Assembly: GCA_040285825.1 (NCBI GenBank)
Contig: JAUPSS010000003.1
Span: forward strand, 1,984,001 to 2,048,000
DNA: 64,000 bases
Origin: Eukaryota sp. TZLM1-RC
Lineage: Eukaryota; Protista; Metamonada: BaSk clade
Direction: 5' to 3'
Positions within the stretch are counted from its first letter, which is position 1. Each line of letters starts with the position of its first letter. This document shows positions 1 through 61,827 of this stretch, piece by piece. The position numbers were made by a program, and so were the translations under genes. Below the pieces are notes generated by a model. That model was not told where the DNA came from, searched no databases, and saw only the letters and a program-made list of their open reading frames with translations.

Positions 1-1730
1 ACTTCGTTCCTTTATCTGGCCCCGTAATTTGCCTCATAATTCAATTTGTAAATGTGCTCAAAAAATTACACTTACTCATTTGTTAAATTATATTATTCTA
101 AGAAGCAATGTTGCTGTCAAAGACCAATTTAATTTTATGTGTAATTTTCATAGTATTGAATCCTTTTTGAAACCTTGTTGTCAAATCTGTTTGATGCTGA
201 TGATGATTTTCTAAAAATATACAGGTGATGTCATATTACCCAGATTAGATGGAGCCTCCATTTTATTGGATGTAATGTCTGATGATCCTTGTAATGTCTC
301 AAATAAAAGGCTTGTGTTAGATTTTGGATAACATGAAATCACTGGTGATGACGTGGCAATAGTTGAATTTCTGTATTTGTCAATTATTAAAGCTTTTCTC
401 CCGATCACTGCAGTGGAACCCAACAATAACGTTATTGTCCTTGGCCCTGTCCCAGTCCCTGTACAGTCACTGTTCTTGTTCCTGCCTTTGGTAAAACCGT
501 TAGATGCGTCCTGTCGACCGTCCCTATCTAACCTCGCTGTCCGAGAAAGATGTATGTATGTCTTTGAGCGAATCTGAAGTGTATTAGTCTGTCACTGATA
601 GCACTAAAGTGGTTTCGTTAAGACTTTCCGTACATCTTTTTATTTCAATGTCCTTAGAGTTGTGTGAACCTAAGGTTAATTCTTCTGATAGTGTTTTGTT
701 TAACTTTTTGAAGTTCCTGAACAGTTTTCCCTCCTCTGAAGCTTTCAACGAGACGGTGTTTCGGTTGAAAATGAACGTAAAAATTACAAGTGCCAAAAAA
801 AATGACCGATTACCTCAGAAGCTTTTTGAAGGTGAAGGAAAAGGCTGACTGTCTTGCCATTCTTAATTCTGTGTTTATAAAACAATTTGTCGCTGGTATT
901 ACTCCTAAAGGACTTGCTGAATTCCTTGTCTCTCGTATCAATGTCCGATTGATTCCTGATTTCAAAACTCTTGTGCAGGTCGCTACTGAAAGAATTGTTG
1001 CCCATGATAGATCTAAAGTTTCACAGAACACTGAACTAGAAAAACTAGAACTAGAACTAGAAAAAGTGAACACTATTCTTTGTGTTGTTAATGAAGTAGA
1101 TACCAATACCTGTTCTAAATCACGCCTTGGTGACGTGCTGAATGTTTATGATAGTGATTATCCAGATGAAGAGCCGTATGAAGTTGTACTCAATCCTTTA
1201 ACAAAGAATTTGCCATCATCAGAGAAGAGAGGTGAAAAAGGGGTAGTGTTAGATGTTGAATAACATCAAATCACGTGTGATGACGTGGCAATAGTTTAAA
1301 TTCTGTTTTTGTTAATTAATAAAGCTTTTCCTTTGGTCACTGCAGTGGAACTCAACACTTGTTAATTCTGAAACTCACAATCTTTTATCAAATGCTGAAA
1401 ATTTTAAAATCAAAAAATACAATGAACCTTTGACCAAATAGTTTTAATCAACAGCATGTAAAATACAATTTATATACATTGGTATTTTCTCTATTTGGTT
1501 CACTTGCTCCCACGGCTATACGTGTTTTGGCAGATTTTGAAATGAATTTCAAGAGAAGAACTAACAGAAATTTCAACAGATTGTTTTGGCAAAATAAAAC
1601 TGTGTTTTTTCTTGTTAAGGGGATGTTGAGGATGGTTTCTGATGCTTTGCTTTCTCTTGGATCTCACTATGAGAGAATTGATTTTGGGAGAGATGGATTA
1701 TTTAAATTTTCATTTATAAGCTTTTCAATA
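1..1730 (+). mobile_element. Degenerate 3' half of CRE-like non-LTR element (older A' lineage), split by an LTR element at 315-1357
   Basis: Frameshifted homology to family A C-terminus (ICKC..LTHLLN, LDVMS.DPCN, FSLFGSLAPTA..FNRLFWQN); the sequence resumes exactly after the LTR insert. Confidence 0.85.
315..1357 (+). mobile_element. Mini LTR retroelement family L1 (gag-only, TRIM/TR-GAG-like)
   Basis: 111-bp LTRs TGTT...AACA at 315-425 and 1247-1357; TSD CTTG on both sides; polypurine tract just before the 3' LTR; degenerate gag-like ORFs (KMTDYLRSFLKVKEKA..F..GI). Confidence 0.9.
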
Positions 1731-1737
1731 TTTGAAT

Positions 1738-2345
1738 ATTTATTGAACATGCACACTTGATTAAATTAATTCATAACTAATGGGACGAATATCATTGAAC
1801 CAAGATTTCCTCTACAAAATCTTGGTCTGCTTGCTGTCTAGCTAAAACTTCTCTAATTCGATTGAAAAACCGAGGTAATCTATTAATAATGCCAAATTAA
1901 ATCCGTGAACGCCATAAAAAATATCAAATCTTTTCATTGTTTTTTCTTAAACCATTTTTTTGAAGTCGTTCAAAAAAGTTTCTGCTTCTACTGTTAATCT
2001 TCCGTTTATCGAAAATGGGAAAGCAATAAAAACTAGCTGTGTATTTCTATCAGCATTAGCTTCTTCAATATCTTTATCATTTTTTCTATGTTTTTCTTTT
2101 GCTTTAAAATCAAAAGCACTTACAGGATTAAGTTTTCTTCTGTAAACCAAAGTATCATTTGCAACATTACATGAGACAAAGTCAACAATAGCTTCAGAGT
2201 TATCAATCCAATCACAGTATACATCACCTCTATCATCAGAACCAAAATTATTCAGAGAAAGTGTTTCCTTCAGCAGAGGCTCTTTGATACACGATATCCT
2301 TGCAGTTTGTGCCATATTGAAAACAGTGTCTCTAACAGCATCATT
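1738..2345 (-). mobile_element. 5'-truncated CRE family B
   Basis: RLE motif DRGDVYCDW..DFV..KEKHRK and the B 3' UTR. Confidence 0.9.
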
Positions 2346-2354
2346 TGATGAAGA

Positions 2355-2431
2355 GTTTTTTAATTAACACATATCATTAATATAAGAGAAACGTGAAGAG
2401 GCAATAATGAAGTGTATTGAGATCGGTCATA
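2355..2431 (+). pseudogene. Duplicated tRNA-Asp upstream flank plus first 9 nt of the tRNA
   Basis: Aligns with 8095-8172; ends in TCGGTCATA (2423-2431). Confidence 0.7.
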
Positions 2432-2470
2432 CATATGATTATTTAAATGTTCATTTATAAGTTTTTTATT

Positions 2471-3975
2471 CGTCATTTGGGTTCGTTTTTAGGAAATAAT
2501 GATGAAATTACCAAAAAATTGTTTGAAAAGTTGAACTCAATTTCTGACAAAATTGACCGAATGATGAATTTAGATATAAAAAAACACATCAAATTTACCA
2601 TTATAAGACTGTGTTTTAGTTCCAATTTTAATCATATATTTCGATCTACAAATCCTCTCGTCACTAGACCTTTGGCTCAGAAGTTTAATGAGTTACGTGC
2701 AAAAGTTCTGTCTCAATTACTGGGATGTAAAATGTTCCAAATTCCTGATCATGCTTTTCTTAGTCCACATTATGGTGGTTTAGGGTGGACGAAGGCTTCT
2801 ATTCTTACCTCGTGTGCTTTTGTTGGTGGATGCAGAAATGCAATCTTTGAGTTTTCCGACAGATTTGCAGATTGGGAAGATTTATTGATGTCAACGCAAA
2901 GTTCCACTGTTTTTGCATTAAATGAAGAAATTTCAAAAATTGATGTAGAAAAATAGGGTCGATGTTTTCCCCAATCATTCAATGGCAATATTCCAGAAAA
3001 AAATGTTTTAAATTTGAAGTACACTCTTCGAACATTACAGAAACGATTGACTGGAATGTATGAAAAAGATTTTTATAATACTATATGCAGCTCGCCTGTT
3101 TTAAATCAAGATCTTCACTCATTGTTATTGGAAAAGGGTGTTTGTGAAAACAAGTCATCAGATTCTTCACTTTTTGTAACCATTGTACCACGAAGATTTG
3201 GATTGTGTGCCGCTAATGAAGCATTTGTAACAAAAGCGAGATCATATTTGAATATCCCCATTAAACAATTATTATCAAAAGAAGCATGTATTTGTTCGAA
3301 TTCACCTCAACTCACTTTGTGCCATGCTCTGAATTGTTCTAAATTGATAACTTATCGTTTTTCATTACATGATGCTGTGAGAAACACTGTTTTCAATATG
3401 GTACAAACTGCAGGAACATCGTGTATCAAAGATTCTCTGCTGAAGGAAACATTTTCTCTGAATAATTTTGGTTCTGATGATAGAGGTGAAGTATACTATG
3501 ATTGCATTGATAATTCTGAAGCTATTGTTGACTTTGTCTCATATAATCTTGCAAATGATACTTTGGTTCAAAGAAAACTTAATCCTGTGAGTGCTCTTGA
3601 TTTTAAAGCAAAAGAAAAACATAGAAAATATGATAAAGATATTGAAGAGGCTAATGCTGATAGAAATACACAGCTGGTTTTATTGCTTTCCCATTTTCGA
3701 TAAATGGAAGATTATCAGATGAAGCAGGAACTTTTTTGAATGATTTCCAAAAAATGGTTCAAGAAAAAACAATGAAAAGAATTGATATTTTTTTTATGGC
3801 GTTCTCGGATTCAATTTGCCATTATTAATAAATTACCTTGGTTTTTCAGTCGAATAAGAGAAGCTTTAGCTAGACAACAAGCAGATCAAGATTCTGTAGA
3901 GAAAATCCTGGTTCAATGATAGTCGTCCCATTAGTTATGAGTTAATTTAATTAAGTGTGCAAATTCAATAAATAT
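2471..3975 (+). mobile_element. 5'-truncated CRE family B (degenerate)
   Basis: ORFs 2447-2956 and 3014-3703: post-RT region, CIC..HALNC, LHDAVR, RLE; B 3' UTR. Confidence 0.9.
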
Positions 3976-3999
3976 TTCTATCAAGTTTTTTAATAAGTT

Positions 4000-5898
4000 C
4001 TTTAGGTGTTAAACAAGGCGATCCACTTGGTCCTTTTTTCTTTTGTCTGGCAATTCATCCATTATTGTGCGAATTAAAAGAAAAATTCCCAGAAATAGAT
4101 ATTGTAGCATATATTAATTTATTGAATTTGCACACTTGATTAAATTAAATCATAACTAATGGGACGACTATCATTAAACCAAGATTTCCTCTACAAAATC
4201 TTGAATGCATATATGGATGACATTTCTGTAATTGCTTCTATTACAATTCTCAAACAAATAGCAACTTTTATTCAACAGCGTTATGAAGATATTGGTCTCT
4301 CATTGAATATCTCCAAATGTTTGATTATTGGCCATGAACCAATTGATTTTTTCATTAATGATGTCAATGTCCCCTTTATCAATTATGATCAGTCTGGTTT
4401 TCGTTTTTTGGGTTGTTATTTCGGAAATATTGAAGAAGTCAAAGGCCAACTTTCGACTCTGTTGACTCAATTTGGAAATGAATTAGAATCAATAGAAAAT
4501 TTAAATATTGAGAAACATTGTAAATTCTTTTTCCTAAAAATTTGTTATTCTGGAAAATTTACTCATATTTTGAAATCAACATCACCATCAATTTCTTTGG
4601 AGTTTTGTCGAATTTTTAATGAACAAAGAACCAATTTTTTGCCAGATTATTAGAAATTGATGCATCTCAGTTACGAAGCCACATTTTTTGTGGTACAAAT
4701 TTTGGTGGTGTTGATTTTCATAAACCAAGCTACCTTTGTGAAGCTGCCTTTATTGGAGGTGGTGAAAATTTTATTTATGAATTTGTGAATCGTTTTTCTG
4801 AAAAAATTGTGGCAGCTCTTATCTGTTTTCTTTGCAACAGGAAATTGAAACTATTTCACCCAATATTTGGTCTAAATGTTTCCCCTCTGATATTGTGGAA
4901 CTTCCTCCAAGAAGCTTGCTCTTTTTACCACTGACTTTTGCAAAATTGCAGAAAAAAATCTTGAAAGTTTTAGAAAACTTGGATTATATTGTACGTCTTA
5001 GCCTGGCTAAGGAAAAAAATCCCGTTTTTGCAAACTTTTTGATTGATCTTGAAGACAGTTGCTCAAGTTGCCTAATCTCCCAAATTCCCAACATTTATGG
5101 CCTTCTACTTAATGATCACCAATGGACGTAATGAGAATGAGATGTTTTCTATGGCCTTGTTCATTACCAAATGATTTAATTTGTCGCTGCAAGAGTGTTG
5201 TTACGCTTTCCCATATTTTAAACTGTAAGTATTTTATAACTTATCGCTCACTTGTTCATGACTCAGTTCGTGATCAATTATATGCCATGTGCAAAAGTTT
5301 CAATATAGAGGCATTTATTGAGCCATATAGTACGTAAGCTGTCTTCAGATCAAACTGATGATTCCTTTGGTAAAAGAAGGGCAGATTTAGTAGCTCCAGG
5401 GATCGATGGTGTTCTCAATGTTGTAGACGTTGTCTCAGTTGATGTTTGCAAAAATTCTGCTGCTCGTTTAGTGTATTCCGCTGATTCGCCGTTATCTAAC
5501 CCCGAAAAACAGAAGATAAAAAAATATGAAGAACCTTTGGCACAGTTAGGTAGAGTGGAACATGTGAAATATCAGTTTGTGCCGTTTGCAATTTCTCTTT
5601 TTGGCAATATTGGACCTTCAGGGTTGCACTTTTTTGAAAATTTCAAAAATGTGTTACTGAATAGGTCTGGTAAAACAATGAACTCCACTTTCTGGTTAAA
5701 TAGAATTGTTTTTTGCATTTTCAAGTCTATTCCAACAATGATTTCAAAGGCACTTTTAGCTATTGGTGTAGAATATGAACGTAATGCTGTGAGTAGGTTC
5801 AGTAATAGTGACGCTTGTTTGGAGGATATTGAATTCTAGATGGGTTTTTTTATCTCAATAATTATTCCAGTTTTAAAAATAAATAAATTGAAAAAAAA
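4000..5898 (+). mobile_element. 5'-truncated CRE family C
   Basis: GVKQGDPLGP, VAYMDD (interrupted), CRC..HILNC, RRADL, ends LEDIEF with A-rich tail. Confidence 0.9.
4115..4206 (-). mobile_element. 92-bp family-B 3'-end insert inside the AYMDD codons of family C
   Basis: TSD GCATATAT at 4107-4114 and 4207-4214. Confidence 0.9.
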
Positions 5899-5899
5899 G

Positions 5900-5979
5900 T
5901 GTTTTAATTAATACATATTATAGAAACTAACAGAAAAGTGAAGAGGCAAAAATAAATTTTATTAAAATCGGTCATAGTA
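5900..5979 (+). pseudogene. Duplicated tRNA-Asp upstream flank plus first 12 nt of the tRNA
   Basis: Aligns with 8095-8175; ends in TCGGTCATAGTA (5968-5979). Confidence 0.75.
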
Positions 5980-8100
5980 ATAAAATTGGTCTTTGATAGC
6001 AACCTTGCTACTAAGAATAATCTAATGTTTACAATTTAACAAATGAGTGAGTGTAATTTTTTGAGTGCATTTACAAATTGAATTATGAGGCAAATTATGG
6101 TGCCAGATAAAAGAAGAAGTCTCTTTCTTTTTTCTTTCTTATGCTAAAAATTTCAAAATCAAAAAATACAATGAACCTTTGTCCAAATTGTCCTGTCAAC
6201 AGCATGCAAAATACAATTTTTATCCATTTGTATTTTTTTGGTTCACTTGCTCCCACGGCTATAGGTTTTTTGGCAGATTTTGAAATGATTTTCAAAAGAA
6301 ATAACAGAAATTTCAAAAGATAGTTTTGGCAAAATAAAATAAGTTTATTTTTATTCAACAACAAATATGAAATACACAATTAAAACTCCACATCCTCAAA
6401 ACCTGCCTCCCCTACATCAAAACAATTAATCGCTAAAGATTCAGAAAATTTCCCAAAAGAAGATAGTGAATCAGAAATTAGTGTTACCATTCCCTTAAAA
6501 ATAGAAAATACAATCCTGTTTTGCCAGTAAACACGATTGAAAATTCTTCCAGTTCTTTCCAGTTCTAAAAAGGAATCTACACGATATGATTTGCACATTA
6601 CATAAATTTGGTCCCTGACGTTATTATGCACTTTGCTTCTAAACGTAATGAAATGTTTACAGTTCAAAAGATGAGTAAACAAAAGAGGTTTACCACATTT
6701 ACAAGTTAAATGATTGGGCAAATTGTTTGGCCACAGAAAACAACGAAAACGCATGTTTAGAAGCCATTCATTGTCTTTTAACAAAAGTCCATAAACAGAG
6801 GGAACTTGAGTTACTAAAGCAGCAGCTGAACTATCACGAATATCCTTTAAAAAATTACCGAAAGCGGGATTTTTAGTTTTGGCCAAGCCAAGTCTTACTT
6901 CATAATCCAAGCCTTCATATAATTTAACCAGATGGTGCTGAAGCTTTTTCAAGCAAAAACGTAAATTTGGAAGTGATCGAGTGGGAATTTCTTGAACATT
7001 TTGAGGAAAACACTGAATCCAGATATCACTGGGCAAATTTTCTAATTCAAATTGCAGTTGATTCAAGTAAAAATTTGATTCACCATTGATCAGATGAACA
7101 TCAAAAGGGAACCTTTGGAAAAATTCAAAAACAAAATTTTTACCACCTCCCAAAAATGCTGCTTTACACAGAATCGAAGATTTGGTGAATCCAATTCCAC
7201 CCAAATCTGCTGAACAAAATACATGACTTCGAATTAAAGATTCATTTACTTCTAATAAAGAAGAAAAAAATTTGACTCGAAGTTTGTTAAAAGATCTGCA
7301 AAAATTGAGAGATACCGAAGGGGAGTTGACCTTAAAATATGAGTGAATTTTTCCAGAATAACAAATTTTTAAAATAAAAAATTTGATGTGTTTCTCAATG
7401 TCACATTCAGCAATAAAACTAAGATCCTTGTCAAACTTCTCCAATAAATTGTTTAACTGGGAATAAATTTCATCCAAATTGCCAAGCCAACATCCAAGAA
7501 ACTTAAAAGCTTGTTGGTCATAATTGATAAAAGGAATCTGAGCTCCACCAATCATCAAATATTGTTTTTCTCTACCAATCAAGAGACATTTAGATGGGTT
7601 CAAAGCTAAACCAATTTCTTTGTATTTCGCCGCAATGTCTTCAGAAACCCTAGAAATGCTTTCAAAAGAGCCAATAATAGAAATGTCATCCATATAGGCA
7701 ACAATACGCAAATCAGGGAAATCTTGTTGTGTCATTTTAATAATATTATGAATAGCCAAACAAAACAGCAAAGGGCCAAGAGGATCACCTTGTTTCACAC
7801 CAGAAGAAGATTCAAGGGTAAAGGAGTCAAAAATTAAGTCTGATTTTTTTCCATAAAATAAATAAAAATATGCAGAAAGTTCAGGAAAATCATGAAGAAG
7901 CACATCAAAAATACAATTACGTTTCACAGAATTGAAAGCATTTTTGAAATCCAAATTTGGCAAAATAACAATGTGTTTTTTATTGTTAAGGGGATGTTGA
8001 AGATGCTGTGCTTTCTCTTGGATCTCACTATGAGAGAGTTGCATCTAGTTGCTTGGTTTTGGGATAGATGGATTATTTAAATGTTCATTTATAAGTTTTT
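5980..8100 (+). mobile_element. CRE A' copy with inverted 5' segment (about 5980-6120), interrupted by family D
   Basis: 5980-6120 is the reverse complement of sequence homologous to 1-130; 6141-6337 and 7956-8100 are a collinear A' C-terminus. Confidence 0.75.
6341..7955 (-). mobile_element. 5'-truncated CRE family D with an in-frame internal deletion of the RLE core
   Basis: LDFKNAFNS, QGDPLGP, VAYMDD, CKC..HLLNC; FLE/LERTGR junction lacks the RGD..D region present at 60014-60340; TSD TTTGGCAAAATAA (6325-6337, 7956-7968). Confidence 0.9.
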
Positions 8101-8163
8101 TAATGAATACATATTATTGAAACTAAGAGGAACGTGACGGGACAAAAATCGTTCTTATTGACA

Positions 8164-8235
8164 TCGGTCATAGTATAGTGGTGAGTATCCCCGCCTGTCA
8201 CGCGGGAGGCCGGGGTTCGATTCCCCGTGACCGAG
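8164..8235 (+). tRNA. tRNA-Asp (GTC)
   Basis: Acceptor stem TCGGTCA/TGACCGA, anticodon arm CCCGC-CTGTCAC-GCGGG, T arm CGGGG-TTCGATT-CCCCG, 72 nt. Confidence 0.97.
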
Positions 8236-8749
8236 AAAATTTTTATTTTTATCAAAATTCCTCAATATTCGAGATGAGACAACATTCAGATGAGGCGGAA
8301 GATACACTCTATTTATCTTTAAAACAATTATTTGAACAATTACTTTGTTCTGCATTGCTTTATACAAAGCACACTTTGAATTTTTTGCACTTATTCCTTA
8401 AGACATTTGAACAAGACAATTTAAAAATTTGTTCTACTGGGAAAATGTCCCTCTTTTTTTATTGAGGTATTGCTCACAAATAAATTATTGATACTGCTTT
8501 TTGTACATTTTTACAACACATTTGTGTCAAGCCATTGTTTTCTTTTATTATGCAACTACCTCAAAAATATTGCTTCGTTTTGAGCTGTTTTGTATAGGTT
8601 ACCAATATGAGATTTAGATTGGATTTGTGGCCTTTTGGACGTCTTATAGATACTCAATGTACTAAATGTGCTATCTTTCATCAAGTAAGAAATTGTCTCA
8701 AATTTTCGAGATTGTTCTAACGAAATGCTGAAAAGTAATCGATTTTATG

Positions 8750-10150
8750 CCAAATAAGACTGATGATTTTGAAAATTTTGTAAAAAAGAAGAATGAACAC
8801 GTGTTTTGATCACCGTTTCATGTTGAATCCTATTGTTTTTACTATTTTTAAAGCAGTTCCTGAAATGATTTCGAAAGCTGTGATGTCTGTCAGTGCACAT
8901 TACGAAAACAGTTTCATGGTGGGGAAGCTTGTTTTGAAGATATTGATGTTTAGACTGTGTTTTTTAGAATAAATTAAATTTGGAAAAAACAAGATTTGTT
9001 TTTTTTCAAAAATCAGGGTAGCAAGAAAACAAATGATTAAGTGACATCCCTTGGGTTTGTGTCTAATTACCAGGAAATCGTATCGGACCTTGTTAGTGCT
9101 AATACTTCCCACTATTTATCTAATTTTGATATACTAAAATCAGGCTTAGAAAATAACAATGAAAAGATTTGGCATCTTTTCATGGCGCTTTCGACTTCAA
9201 TTTGCCATTATTAATAGATTGCCTCCGTTTTTCAATCGAATTAGAGAAGCGTTAGCTAGACAGCAAGCAGATCATTATTTTGCAGAGGAAATCTTGGTTC
9301 CATGAATTTTGTCCCATTAAGGCTTATTTATTCATTTAATAAGGAATATGAAATCATGAAATACACAACTATAACTCTACATCCTCAAAATCTGCCTCAC
9401 CTACATTAAAACAATTAATTACTAAAGATTCAAAAAATTCCCAGATGAAGAGAGTGAATCATAAATTAATTTCACCATTCCCTAAAAAATAGGAAATACA
9501 ATCCTGTTCTGCCAGTAAACACGATTGAAAATTCTTCCAGTTCTTTCCGTTACAACTACAACAAAATCCTCAAGGAAAGCCATAGCAGCCTTACCTAAAA
9601 ATCCAAGCAAAGAAAAAACAAAGAGACATAAATTATATTGGGCATGAGAATTTTCATTTACAGAGGAAATGTGTTTCGCGTATTAGCAATTTTCTATTTT
9701 TGCCAGCAAGAAGAGGATTATTTACATCCGAGTTAATGAGATGTTCGTTAGAAGAATGACAAGGGTCAATAGACATGGCGTTCAAAATAGTGAAACTACC
9801 ATTTAAGCCGGGAACAACCAGATCACCTCTTGTCAGACCCATAGAAGCTCTGTTGTAGCGCGTACTGTCAATATTGGGGTCATCAAGAATTAATTTTAAT
9901 AACAACGGCTCTAAAAAGGAATCTACTCGATATGATTTACACATTACATAAATTTGGTCCCTGGCATTATTATGCTCTTTATTTCTAAATGTAATGAAAT
10001 GTTTACAGTTCAAAAGATGAGTAAACAAAAGAGGTTTACCACAATTACATGTTAAATGATTGGGCAAATTGTTTGGCCATAGAAAACAACAAAATTTCGC
10101 CCCATTAGTTATGAGTTGATTTTGTTAAGTGAGCAAGTTTAATAAATTAA
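8750..10150. mobile_element. Mosaic of degenerate CRE 3' fragments (G +, B +, D-like -, B tail)
   Basis: D-like ORF 9654-10067 (TRGDLVVPG..SIDPC); B C-terminus about 9150-9320; G-like about 8750-8960. Confidence 0.75.
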
Positions 10151-14205: not shown

Positions 14206-14320
14206 AACATTACATTTAACTTTGTTTACTTGTTTTACTTTCCTGATTTCTTTTATTGTGCTCATAAACTACAGAAAGCCATCATGTGTTGTAAATATTT
14301 TCGATTAACAAACATTGAAA

Positions 14321-14394
14321 TGTTTCCGCCGAGACTCGAACTCGGGACCATCTGTGTGTTAGACAGATATCCTAACCAACTAGACCACAGAAAC
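14321..14394 (-). tRNA. tRNA-Val (AAC)
   Basis: Minus strand GTTTCTG..CGGAAAC-A acceptor, TCTGT-CTAACAC-ACAGA anticodon arm, CCGAG-TTCGAGT-CTCGG T arm. Confidence 0.95.
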
Positions 14395-14709
14395 AACTGT
14401 CGTCGACCATAGCTCTAGAAATACATTGGTGCAAGCAAATATGCTATTTAATGCCTAAATATATATTCCGAATAATCTTTTTAATGTCATTAGCACTCAC
14501 AAATACCATCCTATAACTTTTCGGATGAAATTCATTGAACCAACAGTTCCACAGTCCGGTTTTGAATCGGTAGCCTTGAACTTGAATCTGCAATTCACTC
14601 AAAAGTCACTGCTTAATTGTCGAACTGTCATGAATATCAAACGTTTCCATTTTTTAAAAATACTTATATGCAACAGTACGCTTTCAAACTCCTCTCATAA
14701 TTGATACAA

Positions 14710-17896: not shown

Positions 17897-18375
17897 CTAG
17901 ATGTTTTATGTCTCGCTAGTTCTAGCAAAACACTCTACAAAACTCAACTCTCAGATTTGAATATTCATTGTCAAACTTGTCACCATCCTCTACTACCAAA
18001 CTAATTGCATCCTATAAATCTATGATATTAAGCAAAATTGTACTTATTGTGAAAATACCACTGTGGGGCTACATTATTTTCAAAGTTCGTCAAAATCCGT
18101 CTCAACCAAAAAAGCCATGTTGACTAACATTACAACTGACTTTAATCAAGTTGTTCGTCTTCGTCACTATCAATCTCCATAATGAAATCCTTAGTACTAG
18201 GCGAAACTACTTAGTAATAATTCAACCATATCATGTGTATCAGGGTGTTCATTAAGTTATAACTTAGGTAAAGATAATCAAAAGAGAAGAGAAATTTATT
18301 TGACGATGATAGAAAACATTCACTGAAAATATATTCACTGATTATATTTGAATATCCCCATTAAAAAATTATCAT

Positions 18376-19256
18376 ATTAATTGAATTTGCACACTTGATT
18401 AAATTAAATCATAACTAATGGGACGACTATCATTGAACCAAGATTTCCTCTACAAAATCTTGATTTGCTTGCTGTCTAGCTAAAGCTTCTCTAATTCGAT
18501 TGAAAAACCGCGGTAATCTATTAATAATGGCAAATTGAATCCGTGAACGCCACAAAAAAATATCAAATCTTTTCATTGTTTTTTCTTGCACCATTTTTTG
18601 GAAGTCATTCAAAAAAGTTTCTGCTTCATCTGATAATCTTCCATTTATCGAAAATGGGAAAGCAATAAAAACCAGCTGTGTATTTCTATCGACATTTGCA
18701 TTTTCAATTTCTTTATCATATTTTCTATGTTTTTCTTTTGCTTTAAAATCCAGAGCAGCCGCAGGATTAAGTTTTTTTCTGTGAACCAAAGTATCGTTTG
18801 CAACATTACATGAGACAAAGTCAACAATAGCTTCAGAATTATCAATCCAATCACAGTATACATCACCTCTATCATCAGAACCAAAATTATTCAGAGAAAG
18901 TGTTTCCTTCAGCAGGGGCTCTTTGATACACGATATCCTTGCAGTTTGTGCCATATTGAAAACAGTGTCTCTAACAGCATCATGTAATGAAGAACGATAA
19001 GTTATCAATTTAGAGCAATTTAGAGCATGGCGCAAAGTGAGTTGAGGAGAATTCGAACAAATACATTTTTCTTTTGATAATAATTGGTTAATGGGAATGT
19101 TCAAATATAATCTCATTTTTGTTACAAATGCTTCATTAGTGGCACACAATCCAAATCTTCGTGGTACAATGGTTATAAAAAGTGAAGAATCTGACGCCTT
19201 GTTTTCACAAACACCCTTTTCCAATAACAATGAGTGAAGATCTTGATTTAAAACAG
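18376..19256 (-). mobile_element. 5'-truncated CRE family B inserted antisense into another B copy
   Basis: Open ORF 18430-19269 (CIC..HALNC, RGD..D, K..KY); CCCCATTAA..AATTAT duplicated at both ends. Confidence 0.9.
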
Positions 19257-42400: not shown

Positions 42401-43778
42401 TCCTAAAATTTTTCATGCTTAAAATTTGCTACACTGGGAGAATAACCCACATTTTGAGATCTTGTGCTCCATCCATAGCTTTAGATTTTTGTCGTTCTTT
42501 TAATTCATTGAGAACAGAATTTTTTGCTGATTTATTGGATGTAGAACCAGAAATGTTGAAAAACCACTTATTTTCTTCAGCAAATTTGGGTGGTATTGGA
42601 TTTACTAAATCTTCAATTTTGTGTCAATCAGCATTCTTGGGTGGTGGCAAAAATTTTATTTATGAATTTTCTCGTAGATTTCCTGATGATTCTCATCTGT
42701 TAGTTCCCAATTGCAGTCCTTATTTGTATGAGTTATCTTGTGAACTTGAAAAATTGCCGCCACAAATTTGGACCAAATGTTTTCCTCAATCAATTCAAGA
42801 AATTCCAAACCGATCTCTTTTTAATTTACAGTTTTGCTGTAAAAAGCTTCAACAAAAATTGTCAAAGATTTTTGAAAGCTTGGATTTTGATGTTAGACTT
42901 GGCTTGGCCAAGAAAAAGAATCCCGCTTTTGCAAATCTTTTACAAGATATGTGTGACAGTACTTCTTCTGCCTTAGTAACAACAATTCCACAAGTTTATG
43001 GTACTCTCTTATCCGATTCTGCTTGGACTCTGAATATGAGATTTCGTTCCTTTATCTGGCCTGATAATTTACCTCATAATTTAATTTGTAAATGTTCTCG
43101 AGAAATTACAACTACTCATTTTTTAAATTGTAAACATTTTATTACTTTTAGAAGCAAGGTTCATGATGCTGTAAGAGACCAGTTATATTGTATGTGTAAA
43201 TCTCATAGAATTGAATCCTTCTTGGAACCTCTGTTGTCAAATCTGTTTGATGCTGAAGATGATTTTCATAAGAATAATAGAGGTGATGTTATGTTACCTG
43301 GATTAGATGGAAGTTTCATTTTATTGGATGTAATGTCTGTTGATCCTTGTAATGCCTCAAATGAAAGGCTAGTTAATTCTGAAATTCATAATCCCCTTTC
43401 AAATGCTGAAAATTTTAAATTCAAAAAATACAATGAACCTTTGTCCAAATTGGCCAGTCTACAGCATGCAAAATACAATTTGTATCCATTTGTATTTTCC
43501 CTTTTTGGTTCACTTGCACCAACTGCTTTACGTTTTTTGGATGATTTTGAAATGATTGTAAAGAGAAGAATTGGCAGAAATTTCAACAGATTGTTTTGGC
43601 AAAATAGAATTGTGTTTTCTATTTTTAAGGGGATGTTGAAGATGGTCTCTGATGCTTTGCTTTCTCTTGGATCTCACTATGAGAGAGTTGCATCTAGTGT
43701 TTTTGTTCTGGGAGAGATGGATTTTTTAGATGTTGATTTATAGGTTTTGAATAAAATTAAAATTTTGGTAAAAAAAAA
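42400..43778 (+). mobile_element. 5'-truncated CRE family A
   Basis: ORF to ..DFLDVDL, A tail. Confidence 0.92.
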
Positions 43779-46700
43779 GTTTTTAACAAATCAAAGGAAA
43801 TGCCTGAAGGACCAGCAGCTTTTCCTTTTGGTAATTTAGCAACGGCATTCAATACTTCTTGAGCCTGAAATGGATTATGGAGCCAAAATTGACAAATAGA
43901 AGGCTTACTGGGGCAAAAATGTTCAGTTGGATGGAGGGATTTCAATTTTTCAACAATTTCGAGATTAGTATCAGCCAGTTTTCCCGAAAAGATATTTTTT
44001 AATCCGCTTCCATATCTACCTCTCAAAAACAATTTTCTTGCTTGAAAAGATGAATTAGCTTTTCTCTGTTTTGGTTTGTAATTAATTTTCTTCTTATTCT
44101 TTTTGGCAAAGAATTTCCAAAATCTTGTTATGTTCCATTTGTTTAATTTCAGTTGCGAAGAAAAAGAACGCATTTCCATTGACAAAGGAACAGAACTGGC
44201 AGGACTCACCTCTACAGGAATTTTAACAGGTGCACGAAGAGAATCACTTGTTTGACAGTCAAAACAAAACAAGAGAGGGCGACCATTAGAAGAATTAGAG
44301 AGGAACTTTTTGCAAAGAGGACAACTGTAAAAAAAAGGACTCAAATGAAAGGCTTGTTAATTCTGAAATTCATAATCTTCTTTCAAATGCTGAAAATTTC
44401 AAACTCAAAAGATACAATGAACCATTGTCCAAATTGGCCAGTCTACAGCATGCAAAATACAATTTGTATCCATTTGTATTTTCCCTTTTTGGTTCACTTG
44501 CACCAACTGCTTTACGTTTTTTGGATGATTTTGAAATGATTGTAAAGAGAAGAATTGGCAGAAATTTCAACAGATTGTTTTGGCAAAATAGAATTGTGTT
44601 TTCTATTTTTAAGGGGATGTTGAAGATGGTCTCTGATGCTTTGCTTTCTCTTGGATCTCACTATGAGAGAGTTGCATCTAGTGTTTTTGTTCTGGGAGAG
44701 ATGGATTTTTTAGATGTTGATTTATAGGTTTTGAATAAAATTAAAATTTTGGTAAAAAAAAAGTTTTAACAAATCAAAGGAAATGCCTGAAGGACCAGCA
44801 GCTTTTCCTTTTGGTAATTTAGCAACGGCATTCAATACTTCTTGAGCCTGAAATGGATTTTCGAGCCAATATTGACAAATAGAAGGCTTACTGGGGCAAA
44901 AATGTTCAGTTGGATGGAGGGATTTCAATTTTTCAACAGTTTCGAGATTGGTATCAGCCAGTTTTCCCGAAAAAATATTTTTTAATCCGCTTCCATATCT
45001 ACCTCTCAAAAACAATTTTCTTGCTTGAAAAGATGAATTAGCTTTTCTCTGTTTTGGTTTGTAATTAATTTTCTTCTTATTCTTTTTGGCAAAGAATTTC
45101 CAAAATCTTGTTATGTTCCATTTGTTTAATTTCAATTGCGAAGAAAAAGAACGCATTTCCATTGACAAAGGAACAGAACTGGCAGGACTCACCTCTACAG
45201 GAATTTTAACAGGTGCACGAAGAGAATCACTTGTTTGACAGTCAAAACAAAACAAGAGAGGGCGACCATTAGAAGAATTAGAGAGGAACTTTTTGCAAAG
45301 AGGACAACTGTAAAAAAAAGGACTCAAATGAAAGGCTTGTTAATTCTGAAATTCATAATCTTCTTTCAAATGCTGAAAATTTCAAACTCAAAAGATACAA
45401 TGAACCATTGTCCAAATTGGCCAGTCTACAGCATGCAAAATACAATTTGTATCCATTTGTATTTTCCCTTTTTGGTTCACTTGCACCAACTGCTTTACGT
45501 TTTTTGGATGATTTTGAAATGATTGTAAAGAGAAGAATTGGCAGAAATTTCAACAGATTGTTTTGGCAAAATAGAATTGTGTTTTCTATTTTTAAGGGGA
45601 TGTTGAAGATGGTCTCTGATGCTTTGCTTTCTCTTGGATCTCACTATGAGAGAGTTGCATCTAGTGTTTTTGTTCTGGGAGAGATGGATTTTTTAGATGT
45701 TGATTTATAGGTTTTGAATAAAATTAAAATTTTGGTAAAAAAAAAGTTTTTAACAAATCAAAGGAAATGCCTGAAGGACCAGCAGCTTTTCCTTTTGGTA
45801 ATTTAGCAACGGCATTCAATACTTCTTGAGCCTGAAATGGATTTTCGAGCCAATATTGACAAATAGAAGGCTTACTGGGGCAAAAATGTTCAGTTGGATG
45901 GAGGGATTTCAATTTTTCAACAGTTTCGAGATTGGTATCAGCCAGTTTTCCCGAAAAAATATTTTTTAATCCGCTTCCATATCTACCTCTCAAAAACAAT
46001 TTTCTTGCTTGAAAAGATGAATTAGCTTTTCTCTGTTTTGGTTTGTAATTAATTTTCTTCTTATTCTTTTTGGCAAAGAATTTCCAAAATCTTGTTATGT
46101 TCCATTTGTTTAATTTCAGTTGCGAAGAAAAAGAACGCATTTCCATTGACAAAGGAACAGAACTGGCAGGACTCACCTCTACAGGAATTTTAACAGGTGC
46201 ACGAAGAGAATCACTTGTTTGACAGTCAAAACAAAACAAGAGAGGGCGACCATTAGAAGAATTAGAGAGGAACTTTTTGCAAAGAGGACAACTGTAAAAA
46301 AAAGGACTCAAATGAAAGGCTTGTTAATTCTGAAATTCATAATCTTCTTTCAAATGCTGAAAATTTCAAACTCAAAAGATACAATGAACCATTGTCCAAA
46401 TTGGCCAGTCTACAGCATGCAAAATACAATTTGTATCCATTTGTATTTTCCCTTTATGGTTCATTTGCACCAACTGCTTTACGTTTTTTGAATGATTTTG
46501 AATTGATTGTAAAGAGAAGAATTGGCAGAAATTTCAACAGATTGTTTTGGCAAAATAGAATTGTGTTTTCTATTTTTAAGGGGATGTTGAAGATGGTCTC
46601 TGATGCTTTGCTTTCTCTTGGATCTCACTATGAGAGAGTTGCATCTAGTGTTTTTGTTCTGGGAGAGATGGATTTTTTAGATGTTGATTTATAGGTTTTG

Positions 46701-48320
46701 AATAATATTAAAATTTTGGTAAAAAAAAAGTTTTTAACAAATCAAAGGAAATGCCTGCAGGACCAGCAGCTTTTCCTTTTGGTAATTTAGCAACGGCATT
46801 CAATACTTCTTGAGCCTGAAATGGATTATCGAGCCAATATTGACAAATAGAAGGCTTACTGGGGCAAAAATGTTCAGTTGGATGGAGGGATTTCAACTTT
46901 TCAACAGTTTCGAGATTAGTATCAGCCAGTTTTCCCGAAAAAATATTTTTTAATCCGCTTCCATATCTACCTCTCAAAAACAATTTTCTTGCTTGAAAAG
47001 ATGAATTAGCTTTTCTCTGTTTTGGTTTGTAATTAATTTTCTTCTTATTCTTTTTGGCAAAGAATTTCCAAAATCTTGTTATGTTCCATTTGTTTAATTT
47101 CAGTTGCGAAGAAAAAGAACGCATTTCCATTGACAAAGGAACAGAACTGGCAGGACTCACCTCTACAGGAATTTTAACAGGTGCACGAAGAGAATCACTT
47201 GTTTGACAGTCAAAACAAAACAAGAGAGGGCGACCATTAGAAGAATTAGAGAGGAACTTTTTGCAAAGAGGACAACTGTAAAAAAAGGACTCAAATGAAA
47301 GGCTTGTTAATTCTGAAATTCATAATCTTCTTTCAAATGCTGAAAATTTCAAACTCAAAAGATACAATGAACCATTGTCCAAATTGGCCAGTCTACAGCA
47401 TGCAAAATACAATTTGTATCCATTTGTATTTTCCCTTTTTGGTTCACTTGCACCAACTGCTTTACGTTTTTTGAATGATTTTGAAATGATTGTAAAGAGA
47501 AGAATTGGCAGAAATTTCAACAGATTGTTTTGGCAAAATAGAATTGTGTTTTCTATTTTTAAGGGGATGTTGAAGATGGTCTCTGATGCTTTGCTTTCTC
47601 TTGGATCTCACTATGAGAGAGTTGCATCTAGTGTTTTTGTTCTGGGAGAGATGGATTTTTTAGATGTTGATTTATAGGTTTTGAATAAAATTAAAATTTT
47701 GGTAAAAAAAAGTTTTTAACAAATCAAAGGAAATGCCTGAAGGACCAGCAGCTTTTCCTTTTGGTAATTTAGCAACGGCATTCAATACTTCTTGAGCCTG
47801 AAATGGATTATGGAGCCAAAATTGACAAATAGAAGGCTTACTGGGGCAAAAATGTTCAGTTGGATGGAGGGATTTCAATTTTTCAACAATTTCGAGATTA
47901 TTATCAGCCAGTTTTCCCGAAAAGATATTTTTTAATCCGCTTCCATATCTACCTCTCAAAAACAATTTTCTTGCTTGAAAAGATGAATTAGCTTTTCTCT
48001 GTTTTGGTTTGTAATTAATTTTCTTCTTATTCTTTTTGGCAAAGAATTTCCAAAATCTTGTTATGTTCCATTTGTTTAATTTCAGTTGCGAAGAAAAAGA
48101 ACGCATTTCCATTGACAAAGGAACAGAACTGGCAGGACTCACCTCTACAGGAATTTTAACAGGTGCACGAAGAGAATCACTTGTTTGACAGTCAAAACAA
48201 AACAAGAGAGGGCGACCATTAGAAGAATTAGAGAGGAACTTTTTGCAAAGAGGACAACTATAAAAAAAAGGACTCAAATGAAAGGCTTGTTAATTCTGAA
48301 ATTCATAATCCTCTTTCAAA
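43779..48320. repeat. Tandem array, 983-984-bp unit: antisense CRE N-terminal fragment plus sense family A 3' end
   Basis: Junction GGAC|TCAAATG at 44341, 45324, 46308, 47291, 48274. Confidence 0.97.
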
Positions 48321-59742: not shown

Positions 59743-61247
59743 TTTTTTTTTCTAAAACTTTTTATTCAACAACAAATATGAAATACACAATTAAAACTCC
59801 ACATCCTCAAAACCTGCCTCCCCTACATCAAAACAATTAATCGCTAAAGATTCAGAAAATTTCCCAAAAGAAGATAGTGAATCAGAAATTAGTGTTACCA
59901 TTCCCTTAAAAATAGAAAATACAATCCTGTTTTGCCAGTAAACACGATTGAAAATTCTTCCAGTTCTTTCCTTTACAACTACAACAAAATCCTCCAGGAA
60001 AGCCATAGCAGCCTTACCTAGAGATCCAAGCAAAGAAAAAAACAAATGGACATAAATTATATTGGGCATGAGAATTTTCATTAACCGAGGAAATGGGTTT
60101 CGCATATTTAGCAATTTTATATTTTTCGCCTGCAAGAAGAGGATTATTTACATCCGAGTTAATGAAATGTTCGTTAGAGGAATTACAAGGGTCAATAGAC
60201 ATGGCGTCCAAAATAGTAAAACTACCATTTAAACCAGGAACAACTAGATCACCTCTAGTCAGACCCATAGAAGCTCTGTTGTAACGCGTACTATCAATAT
60301 TGGGATCATCAAGAATTAATTTTGATAACAGCGGTTCTAAAAAGGAATCTACACGATATGATTTGCACATTACATAAATTTGGTCCCTGACGTTATTATG
60401 CACTTTACTTCTAAACGTAATGAAATGTTTACAGTTCAAAAGATGAGTAAACAAAAGAGGTTTACCACATTTACAAGTTAAATGATTGGGCAAATTGTTT
60501 GGCCACAGAAAACAACGAAAACGCATGTTTAGAAGCCATTCATTGTCTTTTAACAAAAGTCCATAAACAGAGGGAACTTGAGTTACTAAAGCAGCAGCTG
60601 AACTATGACGAATATCCTTTAAAAAATTACCGAAAGCGGGATTTTTAGTTTTGGCCAAGCCAAGTCTTACTTCATAATCCAAGCCTTCATATAATTTAAC
60701 CAGATGGTGCTGAAGCTTTTCAAGCAAAAACGTAAATTTGGAAGTGATCGAGTGGGAATTTCTTGAACATTTTGAGGAAAACACTGAATCCAGATATCAC
60801 TAGGCAAATTTTCTAATTCAAATTGCAGTTGATTCAAGTAAAAATTTGATTCACCATTGATCAGATGAACATCAAAAGGGAACCTTTGGAAAAATTCAAA
60901 AACAAAATTTTTACCACCTCCCAAAAATGCTGCTTTACACAGAATCGAAGATTTGGTGAATCCAATTCCACCCAAATCTGCTGAACAAAATACATGACTT
61001 CGAATTAAAGATTCATTTACTTCTAATAAAGAAGAAAAAAATTTGACTCGAAGTTTGTTAAAAGATCTGCAAAAATTGAGAGATACCGAAGGGGGAGTTG
61101 ACCTTAAAATATGAGTGAATTTTCCAGAATAACAAATTTTTAAAATAAAAAATTTGATGTGTTTCTCAATGTCACATTCAGCAATAAAACTAAGATCCTT
61201 GTCAAACTTCTCCAATAAATTGTTTAACTGGGAATAAATTTCATCCA
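59743..61247 (-). mobile_element. 5'-truncated CRE family D
   Basis: Poly-T tail; TSD AAAGAGAAGAACT (59730-59742, 61248-61260). Confidence 0.93.
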
Positions 61248-61827
61248 AAAGAGAAGAACTGGCAGAAATTTCAACAGATTGTTTTGGCAAAATAGAATTG
61301 TGTTTTCTATCTTTAAGGGGATGTTGAAGATGGTTTCTGATGCTTTGCTTTCTCTTGGATCTCACTATGAGAGAGTTGCATCTAGTGTTTTTGTTTTGGG
61401 AGAGATGGATTTTTTAGATGTTGATTTATAGGTTTTGAATAAAATTAAATTTTAAAAAAAAATTTTCAAGATGTTTTGACAATGAAAATTGTTCCACCCA
61501 AAGAATTAAGTGCATCACGGTTAGTGGCTTTAACTAAACCTAATGGAAAAGTTCGCCCAATTGCCATAGGTGAAGCCATTTATCGCCTGATGTCTTCAGT
61601 AATTTTTAATCGAGTTTCAACAAAAGCTAAAGAATACTTTTCTCCATTCCAATATGGAATCAAAACCATTGATCGAGCTTCAGTTGCAGCTTTGTCATCT
61701 GATCTGTTTTTCAATTGTCACGAAAATAGTTGCATTTTTAATCTTGATTTCAAAAATGCTTTCAATTCAGTGAAAAGAGATTCAATTTGGAAAGAAATCA
61801 AATCAAATTTTCCTGAACTCGAAGACT

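Follow-up and report, generated by a model that had tools for sequence, protein, structure and literature searches.

Retrotransposons of the CRE type reportedly duplicate tens of base pairs of their target and thereby regenerate an intact gene start, the duplication made by SLACS being given as 49 bp. In Dictyostelium, TRE5-A settles ~48 bp upstream of tRNA genes with its 3' end toward the gene. Elements of the CRE clade occupy one fixed position in spliced-leader (SL) RNA genes (PMC12278014), and further retrotransposons that lack long terminal repeats (non-LTR) and encode a restriction-like endonuclease (RLE) are specific for tRNA genes: NeSL-1_TV for tRNA-Pro in Trichomonas vaginalis, and the planarian LIN pair, LIN15_SM and LIN25_SM, for tRNA-Arg and tRNA-Glu, respectively (Kojima and Jurka, 2015; PMC4640811). 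A tRNA target is not new for RLE elements, and the preliminary description of the locus considered here, which knew of no tRNA-targeting CRE element, has to be amended on this point. The locus lies in a 64,000-nt stretch of DNA (the window; JAUPSS010000003.1:1984001-2048000 of assembly GCA_040285825.1) from the free-living metamonad Skoliomonas litria (Eukaryota sp. TZLM1-RC). The window has a G+C content of 32-37% and consists mostly of nested fragments of RLE-type non-LTR retrotransposons. Among them are the pieces of A', a decayed RLE retrotransposon of a family that we call A, which lie at a tRNA-Asp gene together with duplicated starts of that gene. Our tentative reading, which may well be wrong, is that the junctions at this tRNA-Asp site record at least two target-primed insertions.

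The DNA compared comprised the window and fetched loci, ~220 kb of the genome in total; tRNA genes were called with ARAGORN and Rfam, repeats were compared by self-BLAST of the window and domains were assigned with Pfam. The window holds a single tRNA-Asp(GTC) gene at 8164-8235 on the plus strand, which is intact and on which ARAGORN and Rfam agree (Rfam 63 bits). Its start, preceded by ~69 nt, occurs in three direct repeats (2356-2431, 5899-5979 and 8095-8235; units 1 to 3), which hold 9 nt (2423-2431), 12 nt (5968-5979) and all 72 nt (8164-8235) of the tRNA, respectively. These copies had been noticed in the preliminary description and were recovered by self-BLAST, ARAGORN and Rfam: 2351-2431 matches 5895-5976 at 80% identity (E 5e-14), 5897-5979 matches 8093-8175 at 82% (E 1e-16) and 2354-2431 matches 8094-8172 at 77% (E 1e-9). 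The exact 9-mer with which the tRNA starts is found at 2423, 5968 and 8164, and otherwise only in a paralogue, L005:11808, in all the DNA compared. With a divergence of ~20% between units the array is old, and the order of the identities (82% for units 2 and 3, 80% for units 1 and 2, 77% for units 1 and 3) would fit a ladder in which the leftmost unit is the oldest.

Once later insertions of B and D elements are subtracted, an A' stop codon stands ahead of every unit, just as had been claimed. For unit 1 it is the TAA at 1717-1719, with an inverted B element (1730-2355) in between; for unit 2 it is the TAA at 2458-2460, with B(+) (2471-3976) and D(+) (3998-5898) in between; for unit 3 it is the TAA at 8092-8094. 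The observation that the truncated tRNAs continue into A' also stands. In unit 1, tRNA nt 9 is followed by 2-5 filler nt and then by the last ~30 nt of the A' open reading frame (ORF), and in unit 2, tRNA nt 12 is followed by an inverted A' piece (5980-6123). Every unit has the same 3' junction, which runs from the stop codon through the 3' untranslated region (UTR) into a 41-nt segment; the 5' junctions fall at tRNA nt 9 and nt 12 and carry different A' ends. Shared A' truncation points had been named as a sign of simple tandem duplication, and no such point is common to the units. Since the junctions differ, the units cannot be the product of a single simple tandem duplication, in which they would be identical.

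How much target was duplicated depends on where the element ends. Three dispersed 5'-truncated copies (L007:10273, L011:6553 and L012:6553) carry after the stop codon a 28-31-nt sequence that matches the first 28 nt of the supposed flank at 23-25 of 28 positions, ends in A4-6 and is followed by unrelated DNA at each locus; in L008, L009 and young A copies the UTR is related, 22-30 nt long and closed by an A6-9 tail. By this comparison, A' ends at 8122, and the first 28 nt of each supposed flank belong to the A' 3'UTR. That the whole 65-70 nt served as target is ruled out, since sister copies carry the first 28 nt as UTR. The long target duplication that had been proposed is thus upheld in kind, with target and tRNA start duplicated, but not in extent: it comprises 41 nt plus 9 or 12 nt, that is 50 or 53 bp and not 76-80 bp. 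The 41 nt at 8123-8163 have no counterpart after the UTRs of sister copies, occur only beside tRNA-Asp sequence in the DNA sampled and are most likely the native upstream flank of the tRNA-Asp gene. Unit 1 accordingly divides into the remainder of the A' UTR (2356-2382), a copy of the 41-nt segment (2383-2422) and tRNA nt 1-9 (2423-2431), and unit 2 into A' UTR (5899-5926), 41-nt copy (5927-5967) and tRNA nt 1-12 (5968-5979), both on the plus strand. Long duplications were looked for around other A copies and none was detected.

The combination of an exact 3' junction with varied 5' junctions, one with filler and one with an inverted 5' segment as in twin priming, favours target-primed insertions. 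Since the tRNA is broken at nt 9 and at nt 12, and each breakpoint is joined to a different A' 5' end, at least two insertions are favoured over a purely DNA-level duplication. Two breakpoints 3 nt apart in a tRNA are expected of a nuclease that acts there and are unlikely for unrelated rearrangements, and we infer that the two tRNA junctions are the 5' junctions of retrotransposition events. The 28-nt 3'UTR of an old A-family copy lies exactly 41 nt upstream of the tRNA-Asp gene. In the course of events that we propose, these 41 nt and the initial 9 or 12 tRNA nt were then duplicated at least twice, with an A' 3' fragment between the copies each time. During target-primed reverse transcription, the first nick would be fixed at the boundary between the UTR and the 41 nt, and the second-strand break would fall inside tRNA nt 9-12, so that each event would leave a dead tRNA 5' stub upstream and an intact gene downstream. 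The 41 nt could have been duplicated by either of two routes. Perhaps two nicks were placed ~50 nt apart, as for SLACS. Alternatively, read-through RNA of the resident copy may have carried the 41 nt, in which case the true stagger would be 9-12 nt, as is usual here, and every event would amount to an ordinary insertion at tRNA +1; the agreement of 9-12 nt with the customary stagger may be no coincidence. Invasion by B, D and F elements and by an LTR element came later, along with scrambling by recombination between inverted A' copies.

It is less clear that A' was adapted to this target. We consider it unlikely that the resident A' homes to the site, be it by a read-through RNA with the 41-nt leader, trimmed at the 5' end of the tRNA by an enzyme such as RNase P (and with a 9-12-nt stagger), or as a true tRNA-Asp-specific RLE sublineage that makes a SLACS-like duplication of ~50 bp and resides at several tRNA-Asp genes of Skoliomonas. 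Leader-guided re-insertion, as predicted by the former version, would be homing by a transduced flank and not protein specificity. As for the family, the full-length A protein P0033 contains the reverse transcriptase (RT) domain RVT_1 of Pfam (E 4e-43), and the solved structures nearest to the A-family RT are R2 proteins and LINE-1 ORF2p. The CCHC and restriction-like nuclease pattern given for SLACS/CRE, CCHC-...HD-...E-...R.D-...D (PMC12857005), is matched by 68 of the 230 A-family proteins compared, and the family deviates from it with V for R before HD and G for P in R.D. Having both the RT and the C-terminal CCHC/nuclease region, the A family is assigned on its protein motifs to the RLE-type non-LTR retrotransposons. 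Its most distant protein matches in an exhaustive search are unnamed metagenomic proteins.

The A' copies themselves are dead, and the endonuclease motifs of copy 1 are destroyed. No intact A' ORF or A' C-terminus was found among the 230 family proteins by C-terminal signature and identity, the closest of them being no nearer to A' than ~78%. With the dispersed copies L009 and L007, the A' segment that has survived best shares 95% and 93% identity, respectively; A' is therefore an old member of a dispersed subfamily and does not form a protein lineage of its own. In the DNA sampled, the diagnostic 3' end of A' is confined to this pile and the segmental duplicate L005, and a metagenome scan for the A' 3' end gave no match. 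A-family 3' ends in general abut many unrelated sequences, and a tRNA-like remnant was sought after the L007 copy and not found. The idea of an A' lineage that targets tRNA-Asp is hard to maintain in this light: A' is confined to one site and its duplicate, its nearest relatives lie away from tRNA genes, and the absence of linkage between the relatives' ends and tRNA genes is, to a large extent, the very outcome that had been named as speaking against it. Nothing in the loci examined here shows a family-wide aim of A at tRNA-Asp.

The 183-aa 'genes' annotated as P0114, P0115 and ~40 others correspond to the C-terminal ORF of 5'-truncated A copies (~0.7-0.9 kb) and occur on all contigs; two of their clusters at 90% identity have 33 and 97 members. 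At L006, two identical 680-aa A'-like ORFs (3186-5328 and 8001-10143) lie in opposite orientation, each adjoining a prolyl-tRNA-synthetase-like gene, which suggests an inverted segmental duplication. At L012 (5036-6565), an inverted 5'-truncated A-like copy sits within another A-like copy with a duplication of only ~2 nt; this head-to-head structure resembles that at tRNA-Asp, and the locus is otherwise gene-rich.

A second tRNA-Asp gene is found at L005:11808-11879, on a stretch of JAUPSS010000003.1 26 kb left of the window, which we compared together with the upstream neighbourhood of the window (L001). L005 and the pile have in common the A' end, UTR, leader and tRNA, more than 500 bp downstream at ~91% identity, and B and LTR insertions. 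The segmental duplicate spans 7932-12400 of L005, carries an F insertion of its own and has no partial tRNA copies at its tRNA-Asp. L005 as an independent or empty tRNA-Asp site is ruled out by the shared B and LTR insertions and the ~91% flank identity; the same shared insertions imply that the array predates the segmental duplication 26 kb away. A' copy 1 is preceded by an inverted arm of the C-terminal part of A' (S2) and by the same linker as copy 3, such that 5979-6309 corresponds in reverse complement, linker junction included and at 87% identity, to the stretch that begins 196 nt left of the window and ends at 135. The head-to-head junction of copies 1 and 3 occurs once in L005, as a complete pair of A' arms. 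Over the inner 150 nt, the left arm of L005 groups with copy 3 (94.8%) and its right arm with copy 1 (91.0%); in the outer part the partners are exchanged, the left arm pairing with copy 1 (94-97%) and the right arm with copy 3 (95.5%). Such an exchange of partners is the pattern that a crossover between inverted repeats produces, and the arms of L005 and the window are reciprocal recombinants. Copy 3 would have originated either as a retro-copy of an opposite-strand RNA from the head-to-head pair or by inverted duplication.

These findings bring to the fore another possibility, which we regard as somewhat more doubtful than not. One chance A-family insertion ~41 nt upstream of tRNA-Asp may have been followed by DNA-level events only, the partial units arising when breaks at the tRNA 5' end led to template switching and to tandem or inverted duplication on the spot, and being reshuffled later by recombination among the A' repeats. 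tRNA genes are known replication-fork barriers, and the inverted junction that copies 1 and 3 carry in opposing orientations and the paralogue carries once, together with the mosaicism of the arms as the mark of crossovers between A' copies, is what this account would lead one to expect. Several observations weigh at the same time against repeated target-primed insertion. DNA-level rearrangement certainly acted on the pile, and the shared odd inverted junction and the mosaicism indicate that copies 1 and 3 are not clean independent insertions. Copy 2 and unit 1 together look exactly like a 108-bp tandem duplication, and copy 2 could just as well be one; what the serial re-insertion proposed earlier retains are its two tRNA breakpoints with different A' 5' ends. 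No partial tRNA copy is present at the 5' end of A' copy 1 in the upstream sequence examined. The relatives are not site-specific: no tRNA is present at any of the seven relative loci that were fetched as those encoding A-family proteins with A'-like residues (P0079, P0060, P0109, P0039, P0026, P0132 and P0133), and the closest relatives, L007, L011 and L012 with the same UTR and L008 and L009 with a similar one, have none within 6-8 kb. The target duplications of nested relatives measure 9-16 nt and not 50 (for F at 6330-6345/7956-7971, at 59.74/61.25 kb and in L005; for B and D in the A' UTR), which would make a 50-bp stagger unusual for this family. The reading moreover concerns one locus and its segmental duplicate. 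Finally, an array of [A fragment + 592-bp target] x5 in the same window (43369-48278) has units of 984 bp that are 98.6-100% identical and share one A truncation point; it implies that such arrays can grow without new insertions. What the DNA-level account has to accommodate in turn are two independent tRNA breakpoints 3 nt apart, each joined to A', a filler at junction 1 and an inverted 5' segment at junction 2 that are typical of retrotransposition 5' junctions, and a left edge that is exactly the element 3' end in every unit.

Two further accounts differ in what they take the target to be. The preliminary description had envisaged a distinct CRE lineage, A', with an endonuclease aimed at tRNA-Asp, serial re-insertion and a target duplication of 76-80 bp. 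Its geometry is borne out, but 28 nt of the 'duplication' are element UTR, there is no A'-type ORF among the 230 family proteins, an identity of 93-95% between inner A' segments and the dispersed L007 and L009 leaves no separate protein lineage in which a new specificity could have arisen, and the only second locus examined is a segmental duplicate; we give this account little credence. Still less probable is that all 69 nt after the stop codon are a long 3'UTR of an element inserted exactly at tRNA +1 with an ordinary 9-12-nt duplication. Such a duplication would agree with those of F, B and D, which measure 9-16 nt; however, the sister UTRs stop after 28-31 nt in an A-run and continue into locus-specific DNA, and the 41 nt are found only beside tRNA-Asp. 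Repeated target-primed insertion, for all that weighs against it, thus remains the reading that we tentatively prefer.

Under repeated target-primed insertion, the locus resembles several known systems without coinciding with any. With NeSL-1_TV, LIN15_SM and LIN25_SM it shares an RLE-encoding non-LTR copy at a tRNA gene, and the host of NeSL-1_TV is another metamonad; those elements are, however, present in many copies at one tRNA site, whereas the A family, taken together, does not reside at tRNA genes. With SLACS, CZAR, CRE1 and CRE2 it shares the RLE type, a CCHC knuckle and a PD-(D/E)xK nuclease downstream of the RT, oligo-A tails and an entry point some dozen nt inside the gene for a small RNA. 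Their target is the spliced leader, whereas here it is a tRNA gene, at a single locus and with dispersed relatives; Rfam detected no SL RNA in the window, so the fixed SL position of the CRE clade finds no counterpart. The CRE-like geometry reported earlier holds as far as the succession of partial target, element and full target and the precise 3' and variable 5' junctions are concerned, but copies 1 and 3 are mosaics. The upstream spacing recalls TRE5-A (~48 bp there, 41 nt for A'), which differs in having an apurinic/apyrimidinic (APE)-type endonuclease, in using any RNA polymerase III tRNA gene via TFIIIB and in making no cut inside the tRNA. The tRNA-Val gene of the window (14320-14395) has no A-family end at a distance comparable to 41 nt, of the kind that a TRE5-like fixed spacing would entail. 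The 984-bp array at 43.4-48.3 kb is alike in joining an element 3' fragment and a target stretch head to tail; it has identical junctions and units ~99% alike, whereas the tRNA-Asp units differ in their junctions and are ~20% diverged. Each of its units consists of an A-family 3' fragment (~385 nt, with UTR and A9 tail) and 592 nt antisense of another element, and the 592-nt target is absent upstream of the first A copy, which is longer. Identical junctions and near-identical units indicate that this array arose by recent unequal crossing-over.

The remaining features of positions 1-8235 reflect the decay and invasion of the A' copies. The RLE-domain part (S1) of A' copy 1 (1-315, plus strand) is 82% identical to A copies such as 43043-43373; its translation has a broken frame and has lost the zinc-knuckle and catalytic residues. 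Beyond the left edge of the window the copy goes on for ~200 nt, with an inverted A' arm and a 19-nt linker. A small LTR-type element (316-1357, strand not assigned; end repeats 305-425 and 1237-1357) entered copy 1 later and, since it is also found in L005, is older than the segmental duplication. The C-terminal part (S2) of copy 1 follows (1358-1729, plus strand), ending in the first 10 nt of the UTR (1720-1729). The inverted, 5'-truncated B-family RLE element (1730-2355, minus strand) is 91-93% identical to B at 3361-3976 and 18374-18993; its insertion point lies 9 nt into the A' 3'UTR, with a 9-nt T-rich duplication (1721-1729/2356-2364), and the UTR/inverted-B junction is also present in L005. 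The filler and A' copy 2 (2432-2470, plus strand) comprise, after the ORF end and stop codon given above, the first 10 nt of the UTR, in a stretch 100% identical to 8071-8102 by self-BLAST. In the nest of later insertions (2471-5898, plus strand), B(+) is followed by its target-duplication copy (3977-3997) and by D(+), which has an oligo-A tail and contains an 88-nt B fragment (4117-4204); the insertion points of B(+) and D(+) lie within the first ~12 nt of the A' UTR, and the ORFs of this nest still show legible RT motifs. The 5' part of A' copy 3 (5980-6345, plus strand) consists of inverted S1 (5980-6123), a 10-19-nt linker and direct S2 from 6134. It is interrupted by an F-family RLE element (6346-7955, minus strand; 554-aa ORF 6380-8044 with RT domain) with a target duplication of 13-15 nt (~6330-6345/7956-7971), which at 99% identity to 60334-61249 must be young. 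The 3' part of copy 3 (7956-8122, plus strand) contains an in-frame TAG (8065-8067) ahead of the TAA, and a 28-nt 3'UTR (8095-8122) that leads into the 41-nt segment, likewise on the plus strand.

The later insertions show position preferences of their own. The first 9-14 nt of the A' 3'UTR (T6AAT right after the stop codon) form a small hot spot that took up B(-), B(+) and D, with duplications of 9-16 nt, at 1720-1730, 2461-2471, 3977-3998 and 5897-5910. Three independent young F insertions lie inside one 50-nt A-family stretch just before the conserved FWQN-coding part (window 6330-6345/7956-7971 and ~59745/61250, and L005 10608/11555), in both orientations and with duplications of 13-15, 11-12 and 9 nt, respectively; F thus seems to prefer an FWQN-proximal spot in its relatives. 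Around tRNA-Val (14320-14395, minus strand), the segment 13779-15157 holds two inverted B-family 3' fragments of 436 nt each, 93% complementary and with their 3' ends outward, and the tRNA gene lies inside their 507-nt spacer.

What the pile at tRNA-Asp means hinges on the two tRNA junctions. If they are not insertions, what we have is a transposon pile of the ordinary sort, much rearranged. If they are, an RLE retrotransposon would land at the start of a tRNA gene while rebuilding that gene, the strategy by which SLACS exploits the spliced leader and NeSL-1_TV tRNA-Pro, here in a deep-branching free-living metamonad. A generally non-specific family that repeats at one site would then bear on the origin of site specificity.

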